Shown here in pieces: positions 41,967 through 58,543 of a stretch of DNA of 64,000 bases; within the stretch, counting starts at the first letter, position 1; each line of letters opens with the position of its first letter. Position numbers and translations under genes: made by a program. This stretch comes from Adineta vaga (taxonomy: Eukaryota > Animalia > Rotifera): positions 8,680,001-8,744,000 of the forward strand of contig CP075497.1 in NCBI GenBank assembly GCA_021613535.1, given 5' to 3'. The notes beneath the pieces are model-generated. The model did no database searches. It was not told the DNA's origin and saw only the letters and a list, made by a program, of their open reading frames with translations.

Positions 41967-42552
41967 TTAACCTAAATTGAATGTAAAGAATTTTTAGACT
42001 GTCGTCAATGATGGTTGACAGTTTTCCTTACCTTGTTGTTTTCCCTTTCCTTGACCACCATTGCTGGCTGGCGGTGTTTGGCCGTTGGGTGGTGGTGTTT
42101 GACCATTGGCTGGTGGTGATTGACCGTTGGCTGGTGGTGATTGACCGTTGGCTGGTGGTGTTTGACCGTTAGCTGGTGGTGTTTGACCGTTAGCTGGTGG
42201 TGTTTGGCCATTGGCTGGTGGTGTTTGACCGTTGGCTGGTGGTGTTTGACCGTTAGCTGGTGGTGTTTGACCGTTGGCTGGTGGTGTTTGACCGTTAGCT
42301 GGTGGTGTTTGGCCATTGGCTGGTGGTGATTGACCGTTGGCTGGTGGTGTTTGACCGTTAGCTGGTGGTGTTTGACCGTTGGCTGGTGGTGTTTGACCGT
42401 TGGCTGGTGGTGTTTGACCGCCGCTTGAGCCAGTTGGTGCCGAGAAGACGGCAATGGCACAGATAAACTAAAATCAAACACATTAAGAAAATAAATGGGA
42501 AATAAACAAACACTGAACTGACCAATGTTAAAACAATGATAGCTGATCGCAT
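41967..42552 (-). CDS. Secreted low-complexity protein with 17 x GQ[T/S]PPAN repeats (~156 aa, 3 exons)
   Basis: Exons 42552-42523, 42467-42032 and 41971-41967 with 55- and 60-nt GT-AG introns give MRSAIIVLTLFICAIAVFS-APTGSSG(GQTPPAN)17..GGQGKGKQQG*. Most repeat variation is synonymous in this frame. Confidence 0.8.
42063..42419 (-). repeat. 21-bp coding tandem repeat, 17 units (GGTCAAACACCACCAGCCAAC consensus)
   Basis: Seen directly; head-to-tail with no spacers. Confidence 0.95.
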
Positions 42553-43754: not shown

Positions 43755-45039
43755 TGATCAATGTGTTATATCTATATTGTATTGTGCAATTTGTAATTCG
43801 TATAACAATCATCAATAGTGTTACGAAATCTCAACCACAGGAATATCGAGCTTTTTTCAATCGACCACAAAATGTTTATCAACAACGACAAGAACAAATA
43901 GCAAGTATAAATAGTCAGAAATGGTATTATTCATCTAATAATCAACCAACAGCTTCGTCATGGTTTTGGACAAATCAAAATGTACCATCATCAAATTTTT
44001 ATCAAAATTCACTCCCATTTAATCAAGTTGATCAATTATCCAATTGGGTATGTGGAAGAAATCAAATAAGCAATCGATTTGCACGTATTATGGGTGGACA
44101 AGATGCTGTACCACATTCATATCCTTGGATGGTTTCTTTAGCAAAACGTTCTTTAAATAATATTCATTTATGTGGTGGTGTAATTATCACAAGACGTCAT
44201 GTTCTATCTGCTGCACATTGTATGGAAGATTTTAATGATGTGTCAGATTTAAATGTTATTACCGGTACACATTATGCTAACGATAAACGGAATCCTGCAG
44301 CTGCTATTGCAATAACTGTTCATCCTCGATACGATTCTGAAACATTTGCCAATGATATCGCTGTTATTACTCTGTTATCTCCATTACCTGATAATGATCC
44401 ACGAATTGCAACAATTTGTTTACCGCCAGATGATATTCCGGGAAAAAGTTATCCACCTATGAAAAGTTCCGGTGTTGCTATTGGTTGGGGATCCACTTAT
44501 TTCGGTGGTGATCCATCGCCAACGCTTAAACAAGTAGTTTTACCAATTCTTGAAACAACTAAATGGCCATGCAATATATTTGTTACTTATGCTAATGGGC
44601 AGATTTGTGCGGGAGAATTAAGTGGTGGCGTTGATACATGTCAAGCTGACTCAGGTTAAATAATAAACATCTTTTTTGTTCTCTGCAACAGAAACAAACA
44701 TAATTGAATTTTTTACTTCAGGTGGACCATTAATGGTCGAAACTGCAAACAATCGTTGGGAAGTTATAGGTATAACATCATTTGGTAAATCATGGTAAGT
44801 TATGCCATCAAATATTGACAATTAAAATGAAATATTTTTTTTATATTTTTAGTGGTAAGCCAAATACGCCTGGAATTTATACTCGTGTAAGTACTTATAA
44901 TAGTTTTATTCGATCAACAATTGGCCTCTCACAATACAGTCCATATTATTCTTCATCAGCATTCTCATCATCATTAAGTTCTTCGCCAATGAAACTGCAC
45001 ATCAGTATTATGTTTTTGATAGTATTTTTTCTAATTTAA
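43755..45039 (+). CDS. Trypsin-like S1 serine protease with Q/N-rich propeptide and hydrophobic C-terminus, 3 exons
   Basis: R|IMGG, SAAHC, NDIAV, VDTCQADSG|GP, PGIYTRV; S-rich spacer then hydrophobic tail. Confidence 0.92.
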
Positions 45040-45493
45040 TCAGAAAAGAAACGGAAAAATCTGAGCTTTTTCTTGTACAAATTTGTTAAATGTTTTATTT
45101 TTTTTCTGCTCTTTTTTGAACGTTTATTCGAATAGAATAAGGTCGAACAGTATCGTATTAATTCTTTTAAGTATTTTTTCACTTCTCTTCTCATCATCAT
45201 GCTCTCATATGAGTAAGATCAATTCTATATTTCTCTTTTTATTGACAGAGAAGGAGAAAAAAAAAGACCGTTTAACAATATATCATCGTAAAAAAACGAA
45301 TACGAATGCTTCATGGTCTTTACATGCTTTATGTATATATGTATATTTAATGCAAATAGACAGCAATGAAAATGAGCATGAAAATTAAAAAAAAAAAGAA
45401 AATGAGGAAATCATATATGCATATGTATATCGGTGAATCAATCAATCGATAAGTGATATATCAGAAAAGTCGAGAATAGATTTATGATTTGAG

Positions 45494-46919
45494 TTACTCA
45501 AAATCGGTCGCAAAACCAGTATCGATTTTCGATCGAGCATGCCATCGTGGTTTTTTATTGAAAATCTATATTTTTAGAAGAAAATATTTTTTTTTCAAGA
45601 AATTCAATTGAAATTTTTACCACAGGTTTTGTATGTGTATAATTTGAATCATAAGAATCATTGAAAGAATCAATCTTTGGCGCAGATCTCCAACGTGGTA
45701 ATTGATTGATAATCTACAATGAACAAAATCGATTTGAAATGAAAAGATGAATCGAATTTACTCTTGGTCTTGGTTGGTTTTGTACATAATCTAACATGTG
45801 TTCATTATGACTATCAGTTTTTGGTTTGATAAAATGCCATCTATCATTCTTTCGATTAACCTAGAAAGCAGAAAATAAGTTGATATTCAGATTACATTAA
45901 CATAGATTACAGAAGTTGATTGACGGTGTTTTCGTTGTCGTACAGTTCTTCGATTTCCCATTTGCTTGAAAATGAATCATGAAAATTGACTCAAGCTCTT
46001 TTTTTTTGTCTTACCGGAAGTCTTGCTGGTCTATATTGTCTACTATACTCATCATATACAGGATCGTAATTAGCAATGTACATTCCGTTAGTATTCGTTC
46101 GTTGATCTTGTGAATAATTCTATACGAAAGAAATTCAAGTAATCCTTAGTGAAAATGTTATTTTTCTATAATAACATATGATTGTTGATATCGAAGAGTT
46201 CTTTCACGCTCTTTATATCTGATGTAATCATCATTATAAGTATCAGTTCTTGGACTTGAGAACCACGAACGTGGTTCATTGAAGATCTTTATGAAAACGA
46301 AAGATTGAGCAAAGAGTTTCTTTTATCTAAATTATCTTACTATAGGTTTTCGACGATTTCGTATTTGATCAAATCCTCTTTCATTATGAGTATCGATTTT
46401 AGGTTGCGCATAATATTCAATTTTTTCATCAAAAATCTGTTGGGCATAAAAGACAATAATTCATTTTAATTGAATAATGCTTTACTTTAACAGTTGATTG
46501 AGGTGGAACATAACGAAGACGACGTCGTTTTGGTTGAGCCTTCAAAAACATTTATAAATCAAATTCTATTGTTGTAAGATTTAATTTACTTGTGTTCGAA
46601 CTTCTTGATATCCCGTTCTATGTGGTATTCCAACATCAGACGTAGTTTCTTGAATATAATTAACTTGATTATATGAGATCGGATTTCTATCTTCATGTGC
46701 TACTACTCGTTTTACTCGTGTTCGTGGTACACGATGTATCGATGTAGATTTAAATGTTGTTGATTGATGAATTGGTTGAGCTACAACGTCATAACCCGAA
46801 ACATAATGTCTGGGATCATCGGCAACAATATAATATTGCTAGATAGAAGAAAATTGAAATTATTGATCTTTCGATAATATTTTCTTCATACATACTTGAG
46901 CGTCTTGATCGCGCGGCAT
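45494..46919 (-). CDS. Hypothetical protein with five exon-encoded tau/MAP-like repeats, ~10 exons
   Basis: Phase-0 exons splice into an open frame from MPRDQDAQ to IFNKKPRWHARSKIDTGFATDFE*; repeated motif I[F/I][N/D]xxxxWxxxPK[I/T]D[S/T]xN. Confidence 0.7.
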
Positions 46920-47416
46920 GATCAAAAGAAAATCTTTGACGTTACTATGGAGTAAAAACAATCATAATAGAAAAATGTTTATATATTCACGTAGAAATAT
47001 TGTCGTGCTTTTTGACGTTAAGTCGTAAGAAGAAATCATGTTGATGAAAAATAGAAAAAAATGAAACAAACAAATTTGACTCGTACAGATGTTAACTAAT
47101 CGGTGGTTTTTTTCAATAATGACTCATAATCGTCATCGATATTATTCTTGTAGGATAAGCATAGAACGACTTCTCAATACGAAGTTACGTGCTAGATTAT
47201 TCTCTTCCAAACTTTCCAACTAATTTTTTTGTATAGTCATACGAATTTACATCAACTCTATTTATATCATCATTTATATAAAGATAATTCATCTTTTGTT
47301 AAAATATGCAGATATATACACTATTTTAATCATACTATTTTCTGTAAACAGGCAAACAATACTAAATTTTTTAGTATTTACTTTTCGATATTTTTATTCT
47401 AAAATGTTAATGATAT

Positions 47417-48055
47417 TCAATTAATACAGTAGGTATTCTGATGATTCCAACATTGAAGTGACATACGTTGACAAGCACTAGGACATGATGAACAATCACC
47501 AGCATTAATCGTTTCATAATATTGATTTCCATTTGCTCCTTGACAAGAACAACCGCATCTTACAGATCCAGTGGGAACGGGTGGTGTTGGAGTAACTAAT
47601 CCTACGCATGTGCCTTGAGTTTGACCAACATAATTATTTACACATATATATGAGTATTGATTAGCACAAGCAATACTGCACGCACCAATTTGACATGTGT
47701 AAGCATTTGCATAACCCACAAGCGATGGCGTACATAAATATGAACCTGAATTGCAACAGTTACATTGACAAGAATAAGGACCGCCGGTCACGGGTGAAAA
47801 TGTGGTCGTTGTAGTTGTTGCATCAGTACATGTTCCTATAGCTTGGCTGTTCGATGGTTGTCCAGTACATTGATAATATCGTGCTTTACAAGCTGCTAAA
47901 CAAGCTATACTTGTGCATACTTCAGCAGTAACACTCGCTAAATCAATTGGTTGACATCCTGTTCCAATACAACATTTACATGAACAGGAAAAAGATTGAA
48001 CATTGACAATATTGAAGAGTAAAATGGAAAAAGTCGCTACTGATGTGAGATACAT
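47417..48055 (-). CDS. Secreted cysteine-rich protein with three CxCx(C)C modules, intronless
   Basis: 212-aa ORF with signal peptide; modules start CSCKCC, CQCNCC, CGCSC and are separated by T/P-rich linkers. Confidence 0.8.
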   Translation of the reverse strand: MYLTSVATFSILLFNIVNVQSFSCSCKCCIGTGCQPIDLASVTAEVCTSIACLAACKARYYQCTGQPSNSQAIGTCTDATTTTTTFSPVTGGPYSCQCNCCNSGSYLCTPSLVGYANAYTCQIGACSIACANQYSYICVNNYVGQTQGTCVGLVTPTPPVPTGSVRCGCSCQGANGNQYYETINAGDCSSCPSACQRMSLQCWNHQNTYCIN

Positions 48056-48442
48056 GATGCGATAGTAATATTCGTCTTTGTCTGATACTTTATAACATAC
48101 GAAGAGAAAAAAAAGAAATGATATTATATTAATACGCTAAAGTCTTTTTCAAATAAAAGAAGAATAATTGAAATTTTCTGTTAACAATTGATGGCTCCGA
48201 AGAAAAAAATCACTTTAATCATTTATCTATCCTTCAATTTCAATTCAAGTCACATCGATGCTTGTATATAATCTTCTACTTTTAAAACAAAGACGGTCTA
48301 TAACCTCGAACATTATGACGAAGGTCTTTTAAATGACGCACTCTTAAATTTAGCTAGTTTTTATCGTTATGTACACCGTGTCATCTGTAATAGTTAATAT
48401 AAAACATGAAAGTATTGGAATGAGAATCACATCATCAGGATA

Positions 48443-49166
48443 ATGTTTTTCTTTATAACAATCACTCTTATTCTTACAATTTTTGGTCAATCATGTTCTG
48501 CTGCTTGTCCAAAAATAGTCACTCAAAAAGACTTTAATGTTACTAAAGTAAATCAAAATATCTTTTGATTTATTAATCAATCTCACTGTAATGCTTCTCT
48601 TCTTCTTCATAAAGTATTTAGGTCTTTGGTACGAAATCGAACGAAATAATATTATTTTCGAAATCGCTTCAAAATGTGAAAATGCTACTTATACTCCTAA
48701 TGATAATGGTACTGTAGGTGTTTGGAATCAAGCAATTACTGAATATAGTGGCTATTATAGTATTCATGGTCTTGCTCGAGTCAAAGATCCAGCTGAACCA
48801 GCAGCTTTAGAAGTTATTTTTTCCAATCCATGTAATAAGATAATATTCTTGATATATCTTCTGATGTTATCATTTTTCATTTTGAATAGCTCGTAAAGGT
48901 GATTATAATGTAATTACGACAGATTATAATGAATATGCACTTGTTTATGCATGTGAAGCTTTACCAATTGTTGGCATCAAAATGGAATTCATCTGGATTC
49001 TTTCGTATGTTTCCTATCTTTTTCTTCCTATTTTCATTAATGAGTTTTTCTTTGTTTTAGTCGAAAGAAATCTTTATCTCCATCACGCATTGATGAACTT
49101 AAAAAAATCTTGAAAGATATGGGTGCTGATGTTAACAGTGTCAAACCCACGACACAAGATTGCTAA
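48443..49166 (+). CDS. Apolipoprotein D-like lipocalin, 4 exons
   Basis: Signal peptide, CP..QKDFNVTKYLGLWYEIER (SCR1 GxW), TTDYNEYALVYAC (SCR2), WILSR (SCR3), terminal QDC. Confidence 0.92.
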
Positions 49167-49327
49167 TCTTTACAATTACTAGAAAAACAACGAACCTTTC
49201 AACTGTAAACAATCCACATATATCTTTGTAATCAGTTATAAGATGTTCGTTTTGTTTTCTTTAACAGCGAGAAAAAAAAGAAGCTCATATATAACAATAA
49301 AAAAAGAAAACGGTTATTCAGTCTATC

Positions 49328-50607
49328 TTAAACCCATTCTCTTGGTTGTTTCAAAACTTTCATAAGTTTCATTTCCGGTGAATTTTCTGGCAAATCTAAT
49401 CCATATTTCCATTTAGCTAACGGTGGTAAAGACATTAGAATACTTTCAATTCGTGCACCAGGTGTTTGAAAACCAAATTTTGTCCCACGATCTAAAACAA
49501 GATTAAATTCAGCATAGCGTCCACGTCTCAATAATTGCCAATCACGTTCTTGTGCTGTATATGTTTGTTGATAATTTGCTTTAACTATCGGAATATATGA
49601 TGGAATGACTGTATTTGCACAAGCTTTAACAAATTTAAAACATTCTCCTTGATTCGTTTCATTGAAATCATCAAAGAAAATACCACCGACTCCACGACGT
49701 TCATTTGAACGATAAGTTATATTGAAATATTCATCACACCATTTCTTATATTTTGGATAATATGATCGATCATGTTTATCACAAGTTTTCTTCAATGATA
49801 AATGAAAATGTTTACAATCCTTTTCATTTAAATAATACGGTGTCAAATCCGTACCACTAGAATAAAGAGACGATTGAAGATATGAATCTCATACAGTGAG
49901 AATACGAACCCTCCATACCACCAATGAATTTGACCATCAACATCAACAACTTCAAAATATCGATAATTAAAATGAATCGTTGGAACATGAGGATTTCTTG
50001 GATGTATTACCGATGAAATTCCTGCTACAAAAAAGTCTAATGGTGTATTTCGTGCAGCAAATTCATGACCACGTGCTCTCATTTGTTCAATTGCTTGCAC
50101 TGGAAGTTTACCATGTACAACGGATATATTCACACCAGCTTTTTCGAAAACATCACCGTCTTGCAAGACACATGTAATACCGCCACCACCACCATCTTCA
50201 CGAGACCAACGATCGACAAGAAAACGACTTTCACTATGTTGTTTGACTTCGAATTGTTCTAATGAATGACAAAGTTGTTTTTGTAATTTTAATATGAAAA
50301 TTTCCATTCGTGCTTGATAAGAATTGGACGCATTTTTCTGTAGAATATTTTTGTCTGTAATTGGTTCAGCCATAAATGCTTCCATTGGTATATCTGGATA
50401 TACATCCGAAACATCGGTCTCAAATGATGATGGTGTTAATCGGAAGAAATCAAGCATTGCTGCATGATGTTTACTAAAAGGTTTGTGAACATAACAATAG
50501 GTTAAAGTTGTTGCTGTACCAAAAATATATGGTAATGCAGTTTTAAATTGTTTTGTAAGACGATTATATGAAACAGCAGCAAATATTGCTGAACGACTAA
50601 AAGACAT
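49328..50607 (-). CDS. CPOX: Oxygen-dependent coproporphyrinogen III oxidase with N-terminal mitochondrial-type leader, 2 exons
   Basis: GGGGITCVLQDGDVFEKAGVNISVVHG, SSVIHPRNPHVPTIHFNYRYF, WYGGGTDLTP, RGVGGIFFDD, QLLRRGRYAEFNL, RIESILMSLP. Confidence 0.97.
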
Positions 50608-50651
50608 AATCTGAAAGAAACAATTAGAATAAAGATTTTGTTTAATACATT

Positions 50652-51582
50652 TTATTCATTAATTTCTTCGATCGATTTTCGTTTTTTCTTTTTCTTTTTT
50701 TCAGAAAAAGGTAATAAAATTTGTTGTTGTTGTTCTTCTTGTTCTTGTAATCGTTGTAGTTTTCCATTCATTTTTATTCCATGACGAGCACCTCTATAAC
50801 AAGCAAATCACATGATTTTTATCTTTTAACATTTTGATAAGAGATAATTATTACTTATGTGCAGTTCGACCACCACAGATGCGAAGTAAATCTTCATCAC
50901 TTGGCCTAAAATTAAGAATAATTCAATAATCAAGGGCAATGTTCATTCTAAAATTAAACATACATTGCAGACGAATTGCTTTCAGTAACAATAGTTTCTT
51001 GTTCAATTCGAAGAGATTCTTCTTTATTACCCATTAAAACCGAACTCTAAATAGATAATCGATTAAAACAATACATATATACATCCATAAGATTGTCCTA
51101 ACGAGTTTAGTAAATAGATTGAAATTTACCTTTTCAAAACGAGAATATATTGATTTTTTTGTACTTTGATTATCATCACCACCAGTACTACCACCATCAT
51201 CATCTTTATGTTTACGTTTCTTTACTTTTTTCTCTTCACTTTCTGGTTTTTCAAGCGAATCAGAAACTTTTTTAGCTGCGCGATTGTACGAATACTCCCA
51301 CCATTTAAATTCACTTGAATATTCATCTTTTTGATTACATCCAACCTAGAAAAATAAAATCAACCAAACATTTTTCTTTCCTCTTTCGAGAGCATTGAAC
51401 TCTTACTCCTCGATTATCGAATTTTAGAACAGGCTTAATTGCTGTTTTCATTCCTTGATTATCTTTACCAAGACCTTTATCTAAATCATTTCATTTAAAA
51501 ATAGTAAATCTTTTTTTTAAAAAAAAAACATCTTACCGTCATCCCAACCATATTTTCTTAGCATTCTCTCAGCAAATTCCAT
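50652..51582 (-). CDS. GPATCH4: G-patch domain-containing protein 4-like, 6 exons
   Basis: MEFAERMLRKYGW..KGLGKDNQGMKTAIKPVLKFDNRGVG, WWEYSYNRAA, SDEDLLRICGGRTAHKGARHGIKMNGKLQRL. Confidence 0.9.
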
Positions 51583-52904
51583 CTTTTCTATGTTGTTTAA
51601 GATATGTACGAGAGAATCTACAAATTAATAGACAACTAAATTCATTTAGAAATTCCACAACGCACAAGTACAAATCAATGATAACTACTACACACACCAT
51701 CCTTGATCTTAACAATTCGTTCTATTTATAGACAAATCGATGATGAGTTTAAATTTTTATCATGAATATCAATGACATCTATCGAAAAGTCTAAAACTTG
51801 CATAAGTTAATCTAACTGAGCAATGCAGCTTTTACAAAGAAAAAACATATATGATTATCATCGAAGAACTCTTTCTCCTAAACATTTATACTTACTAGTC
51901 TGTTCATTCAAATTCAATAGAAAAAAACATTTCTTGTCTTGATAAGTATTTCAAAGGGTAAAGGAACACGCCTATTACGATCAATTGAAAATTGAAAGTG
52001 ACATAAAACAGACTATCACATGGTAGAATACATCATCATGCTAATTAATAATATTTTGTAATATCCAAAATTTTATTCTTAACTGTTATAATATATTTTT
52101 GCTTTATAAAAGAAATACTTTTAGTATTTTAGAATTGTCAATCACTATTGATTAAGTAAAATGTTGGATTAGAGAGTACTTAAAGAGACAGATACTTGAA
52201 CTAAAAGTAGCATCACAGATGTCGAATGAAGTATTTTATTGCATAGTCATAATTATTATAAGTATTGACTAACATTACCATTAAGTAATACTAACAATTT
52301 CAGATCGAAAAGTGATCATTTCAATTGATTGAGTAATTTACCAAATGTTATGTCAGATATCATCGATTAAACTAAAATACAAATGTCATTCATCATGTAC
52401 AATATCCTATTGAACAGATGAAACAATTTACATTTGTCATTCAATTCAATTTAATCTCTTCTAACCTTTTTCGAAAGATCAATCTATTGATGTTATTAAC
52501 AGATTACTTGAGTCGATTTGATTCAGATAAGAATGAAATTAAGCGAAGTTCATTTCGTGTCTACATATATATTCATTGATTTTATACACTTAAAAAATGA
52601 AATTACAAAGACACACGCCAGCAATTGAGACAATAAGAATGTAGAGAAAATGAGATAAAACACCTCGTTCCACTCTCTGTGGAATTCATAGATCACTCGA
52701 TGAACTACAAGAATAAATGTCTACAAACAAGACGAAATAAAGCTGAGATACATCGAAGCAAAAAACAAACAGAGGAATTTTTCTTTACATTTAGTGTAAA
52801 GAATGCTAATCAAATAAAACATTACAAAAAAAAAGATTCAATTTTATTTCACAAACAACATTGATTAAGATATAGATAAAAATTCATGTATTTCTCCTTA
52901 CATT

Positions 52905-54054
52905 TTATTTCAATGGACCACGAGAAACAACTGCATAACCTTCACGTGCACGTTGAGATAAGCCAGCATATAATACAAGAGCAAGAAGTATTACACCGGC
53001 AACTATCAATGTCAAAACTGCGACACAGAAAACTGTCTTCGTTTTTGTTTCGGAATAAACAATAGCACAACTTCGTTCATGATAGTGTTTATTATCCGGT
53101 TTGTATTCACAATCTGTCAAAAATTATATTCTATTTTGCAAAGAAATATTCGAATTGATTTTGTTTTCATCTTACCTTCTGATATGCAACAACTTCTCGG
53201 AGCTCCCTTATAATCTGCTAATGGATCGAATTCATTGAAATAGCCACAGCAAAAAAGTTTCTACCAACATAAAAATTAGAAAGGCTAAATCTTAAAAGAT
53301 TTTCAACATACATTATTCAAAGCATTCGCCTTGGCTTGAGCTTCCGCTGTTGAATTATTATAATTTATATTTAAATCTTTGATTTCATCTGAAATACTCT
53401 TATTTAATCGACCTGTTTTATACAAAACCATTCCATAAGCGCCAACGACCGCTAGAACAATACAATCAATTTAATAACACGAATTCTTTCAATTCAATTC
53501 TTACCTAGTACTACAAATAAAATAAAAAGTAATACAAGTGTTGCCAAACGTAAATTAGAAATATCCTTCAGTGCACCAAGCACTCCCAAAAGCAAAGTAA
53601 TTATTAATAGACTGCCAACGACAATCAAGACAATACTAGCGATAAATAAGTTAAAATCGCCATAATTATAAGTGAACCCAAAATTTTGATATAATAAGAA
53701 GATTCCATAACCTAATGTAGCCAGGCCACTTCCGAGTGTCAATGCGGTAAATCCTCCTAAAATATAGAAGACGTGATTTTAGTGCAGATTTTTTATTCAA
53801 CTTCCTATTTGATAAATCTACTTTTCCTTTCTTTCTCATTTTTACTTTTATTCAACTAGTCTCATTATGCACCAGCAACTCTTTTGAATAAAAAAAACTA
53901 AATAAGATGTGAAACTAGTCGGATGTTAGAAGAAATGGAAGAAGATATAATAATTTTGACTTTATCAAGTTCATCGATTGAATATTTACTAGATACATTT
54001 CAATGAGATCTTACCTAATAAGCCTTTGGAGGTACCATCGATTTCTGCAGACAT
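52905..54054 (-). CDS. Tetraspanin, 5 exons
   Basis: Four TMs, CCG and PRSCC in the large loop, C-terminal GYAVV sorting motif. Confidence 0.92.
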
Positions 54055-55584
54055 GTCGAAATATTGAATAACGTGAGTAAATATATCTGAATGAAACAAC
54101 TAATTGAGTTGTTGTGTTTTCTTCTAACTGAAATTTAATAAGAAAATATTTCTAAGCAGAGAAAAAAAGTGAAAGAAAATTCTGCTTGAGATGGTCGGCA
54201 CTACGGTTTTACTTCATTACTGTGATGTAAAAAGAAAAAAGAAAATGATGTCAAAAAAAAAGAAAAAAAGCTCGGCTTTTTCTTCTCCTCCTTCTCTTCT
54301 TCTATTTCTTCTTCTTCTTCTTCTTCTTCTGCGGTGTAAACTAAAAAAGTGCTCAAAAAGAAATGGAATTTACTGCTCGTCTTTCTCTCTCGAGTGTCCG
54401 GTTCAGAAAGAGAAAGACATGGATATATGAAGATTGTCTATTTTTTCTCCTTCTTACCTATGTCGTATACGTGTGAATGAAGATAATACACCTTTTTTTC
54501 ACTACCGAACTCCAATGAGAGACAGACAGAGAGCGCTCACACACACACATACATCGTCTGCCTATGGCATTATCCTCTTTTCTTCTCTTGCTATTTCGCT
54601 CGAAATTTGAGCGAGTGCGACGACAAGACAAAATTTTAACCAGTCAACTCTAGGTGACAATAAGAGAAGGAAAAAAAATATGAATCTAAAGGATATGCTT
54701 GTATATACTGTGACCGAGCTCGCAGAGAATGTTATTTATTGAATAAACTAAATGAATATACTGAACGGATAAAACGAAGAAGAGGAGAAAAATGAAGAAA
54801 GTTCATCGTCAATGATGTTGAAAAAGGTGTATATAAACAACTAAATGAAAAAAAAGAAGAAAAAGAGTCGATAGAAAAACTAACTACAGGGTTACCAGCA
54901 TAATTATACTAGAATAAAGACAACGTCGAAGTATGCCATCTCCGATATAGACGTAGAGAAAGGAGAAGAAAAAAAAGGATAAATGTATGTGTGACGCACA
55001 ACCCATAAATTAATCTTTATCCCAAGATTGCTCTATTTATACATCTCGCTTGAATGATGGCAAAGAAAAACTGAGAATATTCTTGAAAAAAAAAATGATT
55101 GAAAGAATGTTTTTAATGATAAAAAATGCAAATAAGATACGAATAAACTATAGACATAGTTTAGATCAATGTCTGCTCATGAAAATTCAATTAGATTTTT
55201 ATGACAATGTTTGCTCTTTTCTCTGTCTTTAGTCTATGTATGTATTTTGGACATATAAAGTAAGACAGAATACGTGCCAAAACAGTTGCCTATCCTATCA
55301 AAAAGTACAATAGTGAATAGAAGTGTGTTTCAATGTTGATCAAATTATATTTGCAAGACATGAACGAAAATGATATTATCGACTATAAAGTGGAAGAAAT
55401 TCTCGATTGAATCTTTAGACAAACAAGAATGTCTCAATTTTGTTCTGTTAAAAGCACCGGAAGCTGTCTATACTAAACACGTCTAATTATTTAGATAACC
55501 ATATGACAAAATTGAACTAGAAATAGCAATTTGTATGAGGTTTTATTTCATGTGAATAGTTTTATAAATAAAAACAAATTGTCA

Positions 55585-56592
55585 TCAATATCTTCTCCAA
55601 TAAAACATCGATCGACAACAATAAAAAAATAAAGTTCGATATCGTCGATTAAACCAACTATATATGATGGGATTATGACAACAACTACTAAGACTTAACC
55701 AATAAAATAATAAATACATTGTTGTATCATTACATTTATCTATTTGTACTGAACGTGTAGGTGCGATTTTTGATGATGATGATGATGAGATAAAAAGTTC
55801 TCGTAAATGTATGAAATGTATTGGTGTACGAGATAAAACAAAAATAATTACTGTAATCAATAATAACATCGATGAACGTGTACGTGTTTGTTCGAATGCT
55901 CGAAAACGTTGAACACCAATTATTGTTCGACGAGATAATATTCGTATTGTTAAAGTACATAGAATAGAAATAATGAACAATGGCATAATATAGAATAGCA
56001 TAACTACACAAAAAATTCGTGTTCGAAGTATATAATCATTTAAAAAATGTTTAGCTATTGTAGGAAGAAGTATTTGACATCCAATGACATGCTTTGTTGA
56101 AACGAAATATATTTGAATTCTTGTAGAAATTAAATAACTCGCAGATAATAATATAGATAAAATCCATGTAAATAGAAGAATACGAAAAAGTTTACGTCGA
56201 TAATATTTCAAAAGTGGATTTTGTATTAAACGATAACGATCATATGCAATTAAACATATTGTAAATGTTGAAGCATTATAAGCAAGAATTTGAATGAATT
56301 TATTTGATATACATATATATGAACTCAAAGGTAAGTTTTCAAGAGAATATTTTGAACAAGATAGAAATTGAATTAACATCGTTAAACTTAGTAAAGTATC
56401 GGCTAAAGCAAGATTAAATAAAAAGATTCGCGTTGTATTTAAAGGAAATTTCACTGTTGATTGAGATAATACGTAATGTCGACGTCGAAAAGTTACTATA
56501 AAGACTAGTCCATTATTAAATAATGCAAATACTGCTGTTAATGTATAAAGTACAAGAAGAAGAATATCTCGTAAACGTATCAATTGATCCAT
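55585..56592 (-). CDS. Rhodopsin-class GPCR, neuropeptide-receptor-like
   Basis: Seven TMs, FLFNLALAD, IAYDRY, FYIMPL, SSCCHNPIIYSWFN. The N-terminus may have an unidentified upstream exon. Confidence 0.88.
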   Translation of the reverse strand: MDQLIRLRDILLLVLYTLTAVFALFNNGLVFIVTFRRRHYVLSQSTVKFPLNTTRIFLFNLALADTLLSLTMLIQFLSCSKYSLENLPLSSYICISNKFIQILAYNASTFTICLIAYDRYRLIQNPLLKYYRRKLFRILLFTWILSILLSASYLISTRIQIYFVSTKHVIGCQILLPTIAKHFLNDYILRTRIFCVVMLFYIMPLFIISILCTLTIRILSRRTIIGVQRFRAFEQTRTRSSMLLLITVIIFVLSRTPIHFIHLRELFISSSSSSKIAPTRSVQIDKCNDTTMYLLFYWLSLSSCCHNPIIYSWFNRRYRTLFFYCCRSMFYWRRY

Positions 56593-58543
56593 TTGTTGTT
56601 GATCATATTGAACCCATTTAGATATAAGAATTTCTGTCGAATGCTACTTAGTTCTTTTTTTCCCCTAATAAATGAAGAGAATCTGTTATGAATAATTGTT
56701 TTGACTGGTCTTTATCAATAAATTCTTATAATATGACAAGTAGAAAATGCTTTAATACTTTTCATAGAAGTATCCTCATGTCTTTCAATTAAATATTCGT
56801 AATCGATAATTATATTTCCACAGAAACATGCATTATTTAATGAAAAAACTCAAAAAAGAAACATTCTTTTGCCTTATTACCTAGACAAGCACATAACGAC
56901 ATAATACGATAAAATAGTGTCATCCGGTTTCATCTTATTTGACAAAAAGGATCTTATTAGTTTATAAATTGACGTAATTGGTACAATGTCACATAAAACT
57001 TTATTGGTTTGATTTTAGTTGTTCACTTTGCTATTTTTCGATACCTAAAGTTGAGATTCTTTTGACTTGTTATGCTAATAATCGTGCTCATTCTTAAGTC
57101 GACGAATAAATTCATGAACATGAGGGAGTAGTGAAAAAACTCGTTGACGTGCAATACTTGTAATTTTCAGTAAAATTATTTGTTCTAAGCTGTTTATTTT
57201 GAGTATTATCATGTATATTCTATAGTTCAATGGAATATCGACGTGTCTTTGAGAACACGCACAAAATTGACGACTATAACAAACTGTATTGATAGTCATT
57301 CTCTTAATTAATAAACTAGGAAAAACCTTTTATAGAATAGAACAAATTTGGACAGATTTATTTTTTTGAGAGAAAAAAATGTGGGGAATAAATTTGGACT
57401 CGATCAATGAAATAATTACGATAAAATATTCATATTCGAAGAATAAACAGATCTATATTCACGACATTCGTATGTCAATATGCATGAACGCTCAAGTTAA
57501 TCTAGACGAGAGATCAAAAGAAGTTTGTCGTTTATCTGAATCAGCGCATAATCTTTTCCACGAGTAAGTCATTATATTGAATATCAATAAGTTTTCATTA
57601 GACTATACCATAAGAATAAACCTTTATATTCAATGTTGATCTATATTGCCTGTATAAAATACAATAAATTATCGTCAGACACGCTTAAGTGAACTTGTTT
57701 TCTTTCTTCTTTGTTTGTTATTATCATTAGAATCAGTAATACAATATACACTCCAGTGAGTGTCACACCGATGCATATATGTAGGTCTAGTTTATACTGA
57801 GAAAAAAAACTATTTTACTTAGTTTATTTTAGTCAGCTTGTAATGAATGTATTGGACGAAGTTTGAATCAGAGCTTAACAAACCGTCTGCAAAGCATTGC
57901 TCTCGTTGAATCAATGGTTCAACTCTGGAAAATTCATTAAAAATCATTCTCATACAGCTACTTAATTGAAAATAAGATGAAGAAATACATGATTCATGTT
58001 TTGAATAAACCAACTTGAAAAATGGCCTCATCAAATTTCAAACAAGATTTTTGATTCCAAAACACAGATGATAACGATTATTCTGTCGTTTAAACTGTTC
58101 AATCAGGACAAAACAGATGAAAATCATTCAACCAACTCATACATATATATAATTAACATTTCCTCATTTAACTCATTTCGTCGACAGTTATATAGTAAAA
58201 TAAAACATGTATGAATAAACGACCTCGGATTCTTTGTCTGCATTGATTACATTGGTTTTGAAAAGTTTGATATAACTGTGAAAGAAAAATATATTCACGA
58301 TAAGATAAATGCATGGTTCAAAATGCGCAGTAAAGTATATACTTGACTTTTCTTCGATAAACTTTCTACCGACAACTAACGCCCACTATATCCATATTGA
58401 TATAAGTATACTATGGACGAACCATGATTATTTTATTTCGTAAGTTGTGTAGTTTAGTATCATTTTCTGATTTATAGTGAACGTACTCGTTTTAGATACG
58501 TTTTTGTTTTTTACTTGCTTTTCAAGAACGAGAAGAATACAAT

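Follow-up and report, generated by a model that had tools for sequence, protein, structure and literature searches.

A conserved GPATCH4-CPOX gene pair as a candidate spliced-leader operon in Adineta vaga, a bdelloid rotifer

Gene content and organization of the locus

The window analysed here is a stretch of 64,000 nucleotides of the Adineta vaga genome (contig CP075497.1, positions 8,680,001 to 8,744,000), and all coordinates refer to it unless a contig is named. On its minus strand GPATCH4 lies directly before CPOX, with 44 nt between the stop codon of the first gene (TAA, 50654-50652) and the ATG of the second (50607). The coding sequence of GPATCH4 (50652..51582) is composed of six exons (51582-51537, 51480-51407, 51345-51130, 51046-50964, 50905-50855 and 50793-50652) and encodes 203 amino acids; the sequence of this model is that of A. 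vaga I4U23_030018. Its 5' UTR (51583..51617, minus strand) begins at the position where a spliced leader (SL) is joined, 51617, as placed by RNA contigs of relatives (L022 and L013). CPOX (49328..50607, minus strand) has two exons, 50607-49910 and 49856-49328, encoding 408 amino acids, and exon 1 is 100% identical to UJR37309.1. Spliced gene models were joined for translation only, and searches took single open frames or database proteins.

The names given to the two genes in the first-pass annotation are borne out by domain content and by named orthologues. GPATCH4 carries an N-terminal G-patch (Pfam PF01585, E=5e-12), its best matches across animals bear the name GPATCH4, and the bdelloid orthologues in UniRef are called "G patch domain-containing protein 4". 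CPOX (CPOX/HemF) matches PF01218 over its full length, with profile positions 1-123 and 127-295 coming from its two exons. In the six species compared, the first 45 residues of CPOX contain no acidic and four to six basic residues, so that its N-terminus looks like a mitochondrial presequence. The two are unrelated housekeeping genes with no obvious shared function. A. vaga is an ancient tetraploid. In a search of its own genome (a 100.8-Mb assembly of six contigs) GPATCH4 and CPOX gave one match each, and no homoeologous second copy of either was seen.

The genes on either side of the pair were considered as further members of the unit and rejected. The tetraspanin gene upstream (stop near 52906) is separated by a gap of 1.3-3 kb with a promoter-like motif in it and is absent in L046-L051, and the lipocalin gene lies on the opposite strand. 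The latter (48590-49330, plus strand) is convergent with CPOX, and the 3' ends of the two may overlap, given that RNA contigs from a relative merge them; the lipocalin-CPOX link is kept in Adineta and Rotaria magnacalcarata and not in the R. socialis locus L012. After the tetraspanin stop, a non-coding stretch of the minus strand (52140-52900) shows 63-70% conservation from Adineta to Rotaria and contains blocks around 52720-52660 that are nearly invariant; it is probably a long conserved 3' UTR. An Rfam search of 45000-57000 gave no match. Further along the minus strand, 47417-48055 holds an intronless gene for a cysteine-rich, secreted-looking protein of 212 amino acids with no Pfam match, and A. 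ricciae, A. steineri and R. magnacalcarata each have a gene of equal length in the corresponding position. Between two trypsin-like genes, positions 42065-42420 hold 17 copies of a GC-rich 21-nt unit (92% matches).

Intercistronic spacer and CPOX acceptor

The spacer between the two genes, taken from the GPATCH4 stop to the end of the CPOX acceptor, is 41 nt long (50611..50651, minus strand). It consists of a pyrimidine tract leading to the splice acceptor TTTCAG (AG at 50612-50611), which in A. vaga ends 3 nt before the CPOX ATG. As no GT is found 40-130 nt upstream of it in A. vaga, the acceptor is unpaired, as had been proposed. A TTYCAG ending 0-7 nt before an ATG occurs at seven of the 2,916 ATGs of the window (0.24%). 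This rarity, together with the retention of the acceptor in nine lineages while the remaining spacer varies, places it beyond chance.

A poly(A) signal, AATAAA (50651..50656, minus strand), overlaps the GPATCH4 stop codon, and 40 nt separate its end from that of the CPOX acceptor. The same overlap with the stop is found in seven lineages; in Rotaria, AATAAA or AATACA lies just past the stop at a distance of 19-20 nt from the end of the acceptor, and across lineages this distance is 19-43 nt. Re-reading the positions given earlier for TAA, AATAAA, CTAAT, CAG and ATG, and the 44-nt distance, showed all of them to be correct. The CTAAT that had been called branch-like is indeed present at 50627-50623, but an alignment of the lineages shows that it is not conserved, and it was dropped as evidence for a branch point.

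Conservation among rotifers

Comparison with relatives, which had been suggested as a check on the pair, revealed GPATCH4 directly before CPOX in nine bdelloid lineages: A. vaga, A. ricciae, A. steineri, R. socialis, R. magnacalcarata and four further bdelloids. Across these nine, 29-48 nt separate the stop from the acceptor, and TTTCAG stays invariant while the spacer otherwise drifts. The ATG follows the acceptor by 7 nt in A. ricciae and by 3 nt in the other lineages. In a bdelloid from activated sludge the tetraspanin and lipocalin neighbours are gone and the GPATCH4-CPOX pair is retained. The pairing is absent in the monogonont Brachionus calyciflorus, where no CPOX was found within 8 kb of GPATCH4.

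Two differences in gene structure were also seen among the bdelloid genomes. One lineage (L009:2664-2790) lacks GPATCH4 intron 2, which is present in the other genomes, and one R. magnacalcarata locus (L016:5654-5839) has a short duplication near the CPOX intron, making the gene 124 nt longer there than in L017-L019.

RNA contigs of related bdelloids

The RNA evidence comes from assembled, intron-free contigs of two related bdelloids, which are short-read assemblies rather than single molecules, and SL matches were made with the rotifer SL sequence of PMC3795323. Contig L022 (JGI 3300056961) starts with the last 11 nt of this SL joined to the GPATCH4 5' UTR and continues through spliced GPATCH4, an intact spacer and spliced CPOX. 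Contig L013 (Logan, SRR22100216) has the same order of spliced GPATCH4, intact spacer and spliced CPOX, and starts with adapter and GAG at the GPATCH4 acceptor. GPATCH4 itself is thus SL trans-spliced at 51618/51617, the junction being read in relatives; neither this nor the promoter-like motif upstream of the gene had been noted in the first-pass annotation.

For CPOX, contig L014 (SRR22100207) starts with adapter, AAGAG, ATA and ATG. The last five bases of the SL (AAGAG) thereby take the place of the TTCAG of L013, precisely at the acceptor of CPOX, and from the CPOX ATG onward the two contigs are 99.8% identical. The match comprises three informative bases in one contig, with a chance expectation of about 1/64, and no donor of the form AAGAG followed by GT or GC was found upstream in any genomic copy examined. 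The SL addition that had been predicted at the CPOX acceptor is therefore seen at the matching site in one related bdelloid, a short match that weakly indicates that CPOX receives the SL at 50610. The SL 3' end is matched over 11 nt in the case of GPATCH4 and over 5 nt in that of CPOX, the latter being too short to separate SL variants. A search of JGI metagenome contigs for the SL-CPOX junction pattern returned nine matches, none of them CPOX or GPATCH4.

With an unspliced spacer in L013 and an SL-joined CPOX in L014, the same organism has both unresolved and SL-joined forms of the junction. L013 also merges the antisense lipocalin mRNA, so its continuity across the spacer may come from overlap of separate RNAs. 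Two other contigs carry less information: L020 retains the CPOX intron and is hence DNA-like, and L023, a chimeric contig of two GPATCH4 alleles, was left out.

Upstream region of GPATCH4 and SL RNA genes

Upstream of GPATCH4 lies a conserved promoter-like motif, TAGATGTC (51774..51781, minus strand), 164 nt before the GPATCH4 acceptor, and in all seven genomic lineages it is found 144-170 nt upstream of that acceptor. The region of the acceptor (AG 51619-51618) is highly conserved, and in an alignment of six lineages both this AG and a GATTTGT block (51738-51732) are retained within the putative outron of about 130 nt (51618..51746, minus strand).

The A. vaga genome has 59 copies of the SL exon, and a GT donor follows the SL in all 39 distinct stretches read. 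AGATGTC stands at -33/-34 exactly in 18 of the 39 distinct SL upstream regions and with at most one mismatch in 23, although these regions are paralogues and hence not independent counts. Genome-wide, TAGATGTCGH has 1,152 copies and its reversed control 431, and the motif falls for the most part outside long open frames (25% vs 70%); in this window alone there is no enrichment (2 copies vs 2.3 expected). We found no paper describing the motif. TAGATGTC is a putative core promoter element; the same motif stands at about -35 of many SL RNA genes, a spacing that would set the start of GPATCH4 transcription near 51746.

Most SL RNA gene copies are arranged in head-to-head pairs about 154 nt apart, for example L002/L003 (C1:2551160-2551336). 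Upstream they have TGTAGAGAC in common near -50 and, in many cases, TAGATGTCG near -35, an arrangement that resembles a two-part snRNA promoter. Only 1-nt variants of one SL were found in the genome, in a search that a divergent leader would escape.

Operon interpretation and alternative explanations

Taken together, GPATCH4 and CPOX probably form a dicistronic operon, in which one pre-mRNA receives the same SL at 51617 and at 50610. The first-pass annotation had already read the pair as an operon, and this interpretation is supported by the SL tail, the contigs that cross the spacer, the conserved pair and the failure of a fusion to keep frame; under it both genes would be co-transcribed, and 3'-end formation may be coupled to trans-splicing.

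The strongest competitor, which we nonetheless consider unlikely, places a CPOX promoter inside GPATCH4. CPOX would then be a monocistronic SL gene with an outron overlapping the GPATCH4 3' end, either alone or together with read-through from GPATCH4, as in a hybrid operon. C. elegans has hybrid operons in which promoters lie internally, and with an internal promoter one would expect an identical SL junction and identical unspliced sequence across the spacer, so that the contigs are compatible with both readings. The earlier argument that there is no room for a promoter between the genes is true for the spacer and does not extend to the body of GPATCH4. The promoter-like motif, however, stands upstream of GPATCH4 and not inside it: among the six lineages tested, none has a copy with at most one mismatch within the gene. 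The lineage alignment also shows no conserved non-coding element in the GPATCH4 introns, and the intron 2 that A. vaga has is missing from the L009 lineage. Invariant columns make up 0.22 and 0.26 of introns 4 and 5, 0.21 of the CPOX intron and 0.43 of the block upstream of GPATCH4. The lack of the motif within GPATCH4, and introns that are no more conserved than that of CPOX, favour one promoter before GPATCH4, bearing in mind that a promoter hidden in coding exons would escape the intron comparison. A further argument against the internal promoter is that an outron as long as that proposed for GPATCH4 (about 130 nt) would place it in the last coding exon of GPATCH4.

Cis-splicing from a GPATCH4 donor to the CPOX acceptor, giving either a GPATCH4-CPOX fusion protein or a GPATCH4-derived 5' exon on CPOX, is very improbable. 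Public databases hold Rotaria annotations of GPATCH4-CPOX "fusion proteins" (P0166, P0168, P0176, P0178 and P0179); several R. magnacalcarata models and one of R. socialis are fused in this way (P0166 with 591 and P0178 with 603 amino acids), and the A. vaga donors that follow exons 2 and 3 are of phase 0 and would be in frame. The phase-0 fusion considered earlier thus has its donors in A. vaga, but the frame does not hold across lineages: with 7 nt between acceptor and ATG in A. ricciae and 3 nt elsewhere, no single donor preserves it, which makes a fusion unlikely. The P0166 model of R. magnacalcarata uses a GT in the last exon that the R. socialis locus L012 and A. vaga lack. No RNA contig joins a GPATCH4 exon to the CPOX acceptor, all of them showing either the intact spacer or the SL tail, and a fusion would bury the mitochondrial-type N-terminus of CPOX. 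Annotations that wrongly fuse the genes of an operon are known (PMC7986045), and in Rotaria it was probably the unpaired acceptor that misled gene prediction into such fusions.

Just as improbable are two independent, tightly packed genes, with CPOX transcribed from a capped start in or near the spacer without trans-splicing and an incidental acceptor look-alike: pyrimidine tracts are frequent in the compact, AT-rich genomes of bdelloids, but the invariance of TTTCAG despite spacer drift, the SL tail exactly at the AG in L014 and the rarity of such sites among the ATGs of the window all argue against it.

Proposed mechanism and comparison with known operons

For the operon we infer a single transcript, the position of its promoter, a poly(A) site for GPATCH4 and a competition between the two processing reactions. 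A promoter about 130-165 nt upstream of the GPATCH4 acceptor would drive the whole unit, producing a pre-mRNA made of a short outron, GPATCH4, the 41-nt spacer and CPOX. The single bdelloid SL is trans-spliced onto GPATCH4 at 51617, as relatives show, and the same SL would be joined to CPOX at 50610, so that the CPOX mRNA would gain a cap and begin its own sequence 3 nt ahead of the ATG. The 3' end of GPATCH4 would be formed from the AATAAA over its stop codon, no more than about 40 nt past the stop, and thus either at the acceptor or still inside the spacer. Because the spacer is so short, this cleavage probably disturbs the branch point and acceptor, removing or crowding them, and a given transcript would then yield mainly one mRNA or the other; dicistronic RNA left unprocessed would accumulate, as the contigs suggest. 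In this arrangement 3'-end formation and trans-splicing may compete rather than couple. For operons of this kind, namely those of Ciona and the SL1-type operons of C. elegans, Satou et al. proposed that cleavage removes the branch point, so that each transcript may give one of the two mRNAs (PMC1488885).

By this comparison the pair would work most like the SL1-type operons of C. elegans and the operons of tunicates, and not like SL2 operons. SL1-type operons also have little or no intercistronic DNA and an AATAAA in the upstream gene, and one leader serves their outrons and downstream genes (PMC1488885), as is proposed for the rotifer pair; they are a minority class beside SL2, whereas at the rotifer locus one SL family was found and the intercistronic length would be set by the position of the putative poly(A) site. 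Tunicate operons (Ciona intestinalis, Oikopleura dioica) mostly hold two unrelated genes and use one SL for monocistronic and polycistronic RNA, with spacers of 0 nt in Ciona and 23-30 nt in Oikopleura, and unresolved dicistronic cDNAs are known from them (PMC1488885), as the rotifer contigs also suggest. Their upstream genes mostly lack AATAAA, which the rotifer pair keeps. The SL2-type operons of C. elegans are likewise divided by 3'-end formation and trans-splicing, but they have an intercistronic region of about 100 nt and a dedicated SL2, in contrast to the rotifers, in which the spacer (41 nt in A. vaga) has its AATAAA 19-43 nt short of where the acceptor ends and a second SL was not seen. 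The chaetognath Paraspadella gotoi, also a gnathiferan, has operons of housekeeping genes less than 250 bp apart with no operon-specific leader (PMC12460157), although it belongs to another phylum and has three leaders.

A broader proposal, which we hold tentatively and at slightly less than even, is that Rotifera have genuine, conserved short-spacer SL operons with AATAAA. Within some 40 nt, the first gene's polyadenylation would compete with the trans-splicing of the second, and the first gene would be under the core promoter motif of the SL RNA genes.

Significance

SL trans-splicing in bdelloids, with the same 23-nt leader as here, was described by Pouchkina-Stantcheva and Tunnacliffe (2005), as relayed in PMC2481426 and PMC3795323. 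Rotifer operons are given as "not determined" in PMC2481426 and are not reported in PMC7986045, and rotifers are mentioned, with no data given, in a general remark of a 2025 paper about trans-splicing and transcription from operons. No study of rotifer operons was found in the freely available literature searched. The mechanism itself is already known from nematodes and tunicates. GPATCH4-CPOX is a real, conserved and well-supported operon candidate in a phylum where operons appear undocumented.

Reviews credit rotifers with SL trans-splicing but report no operons for them (PMC7986045; PMC2481426), and with a conserved pair of this kind the phyla known to have operons would grow by one. The operon interpretation also explains the mis-annotated GPATCH4-CPOX fusion proteins of Rotaria genomes, and the spacer offers a natural test of 3'-end formation and trans-splicing sharing 40 nt. 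Beside the operons of chaetognaths, the GPATCH4-CPOX pair bears on the question of ancestral operons in Gnathifera.
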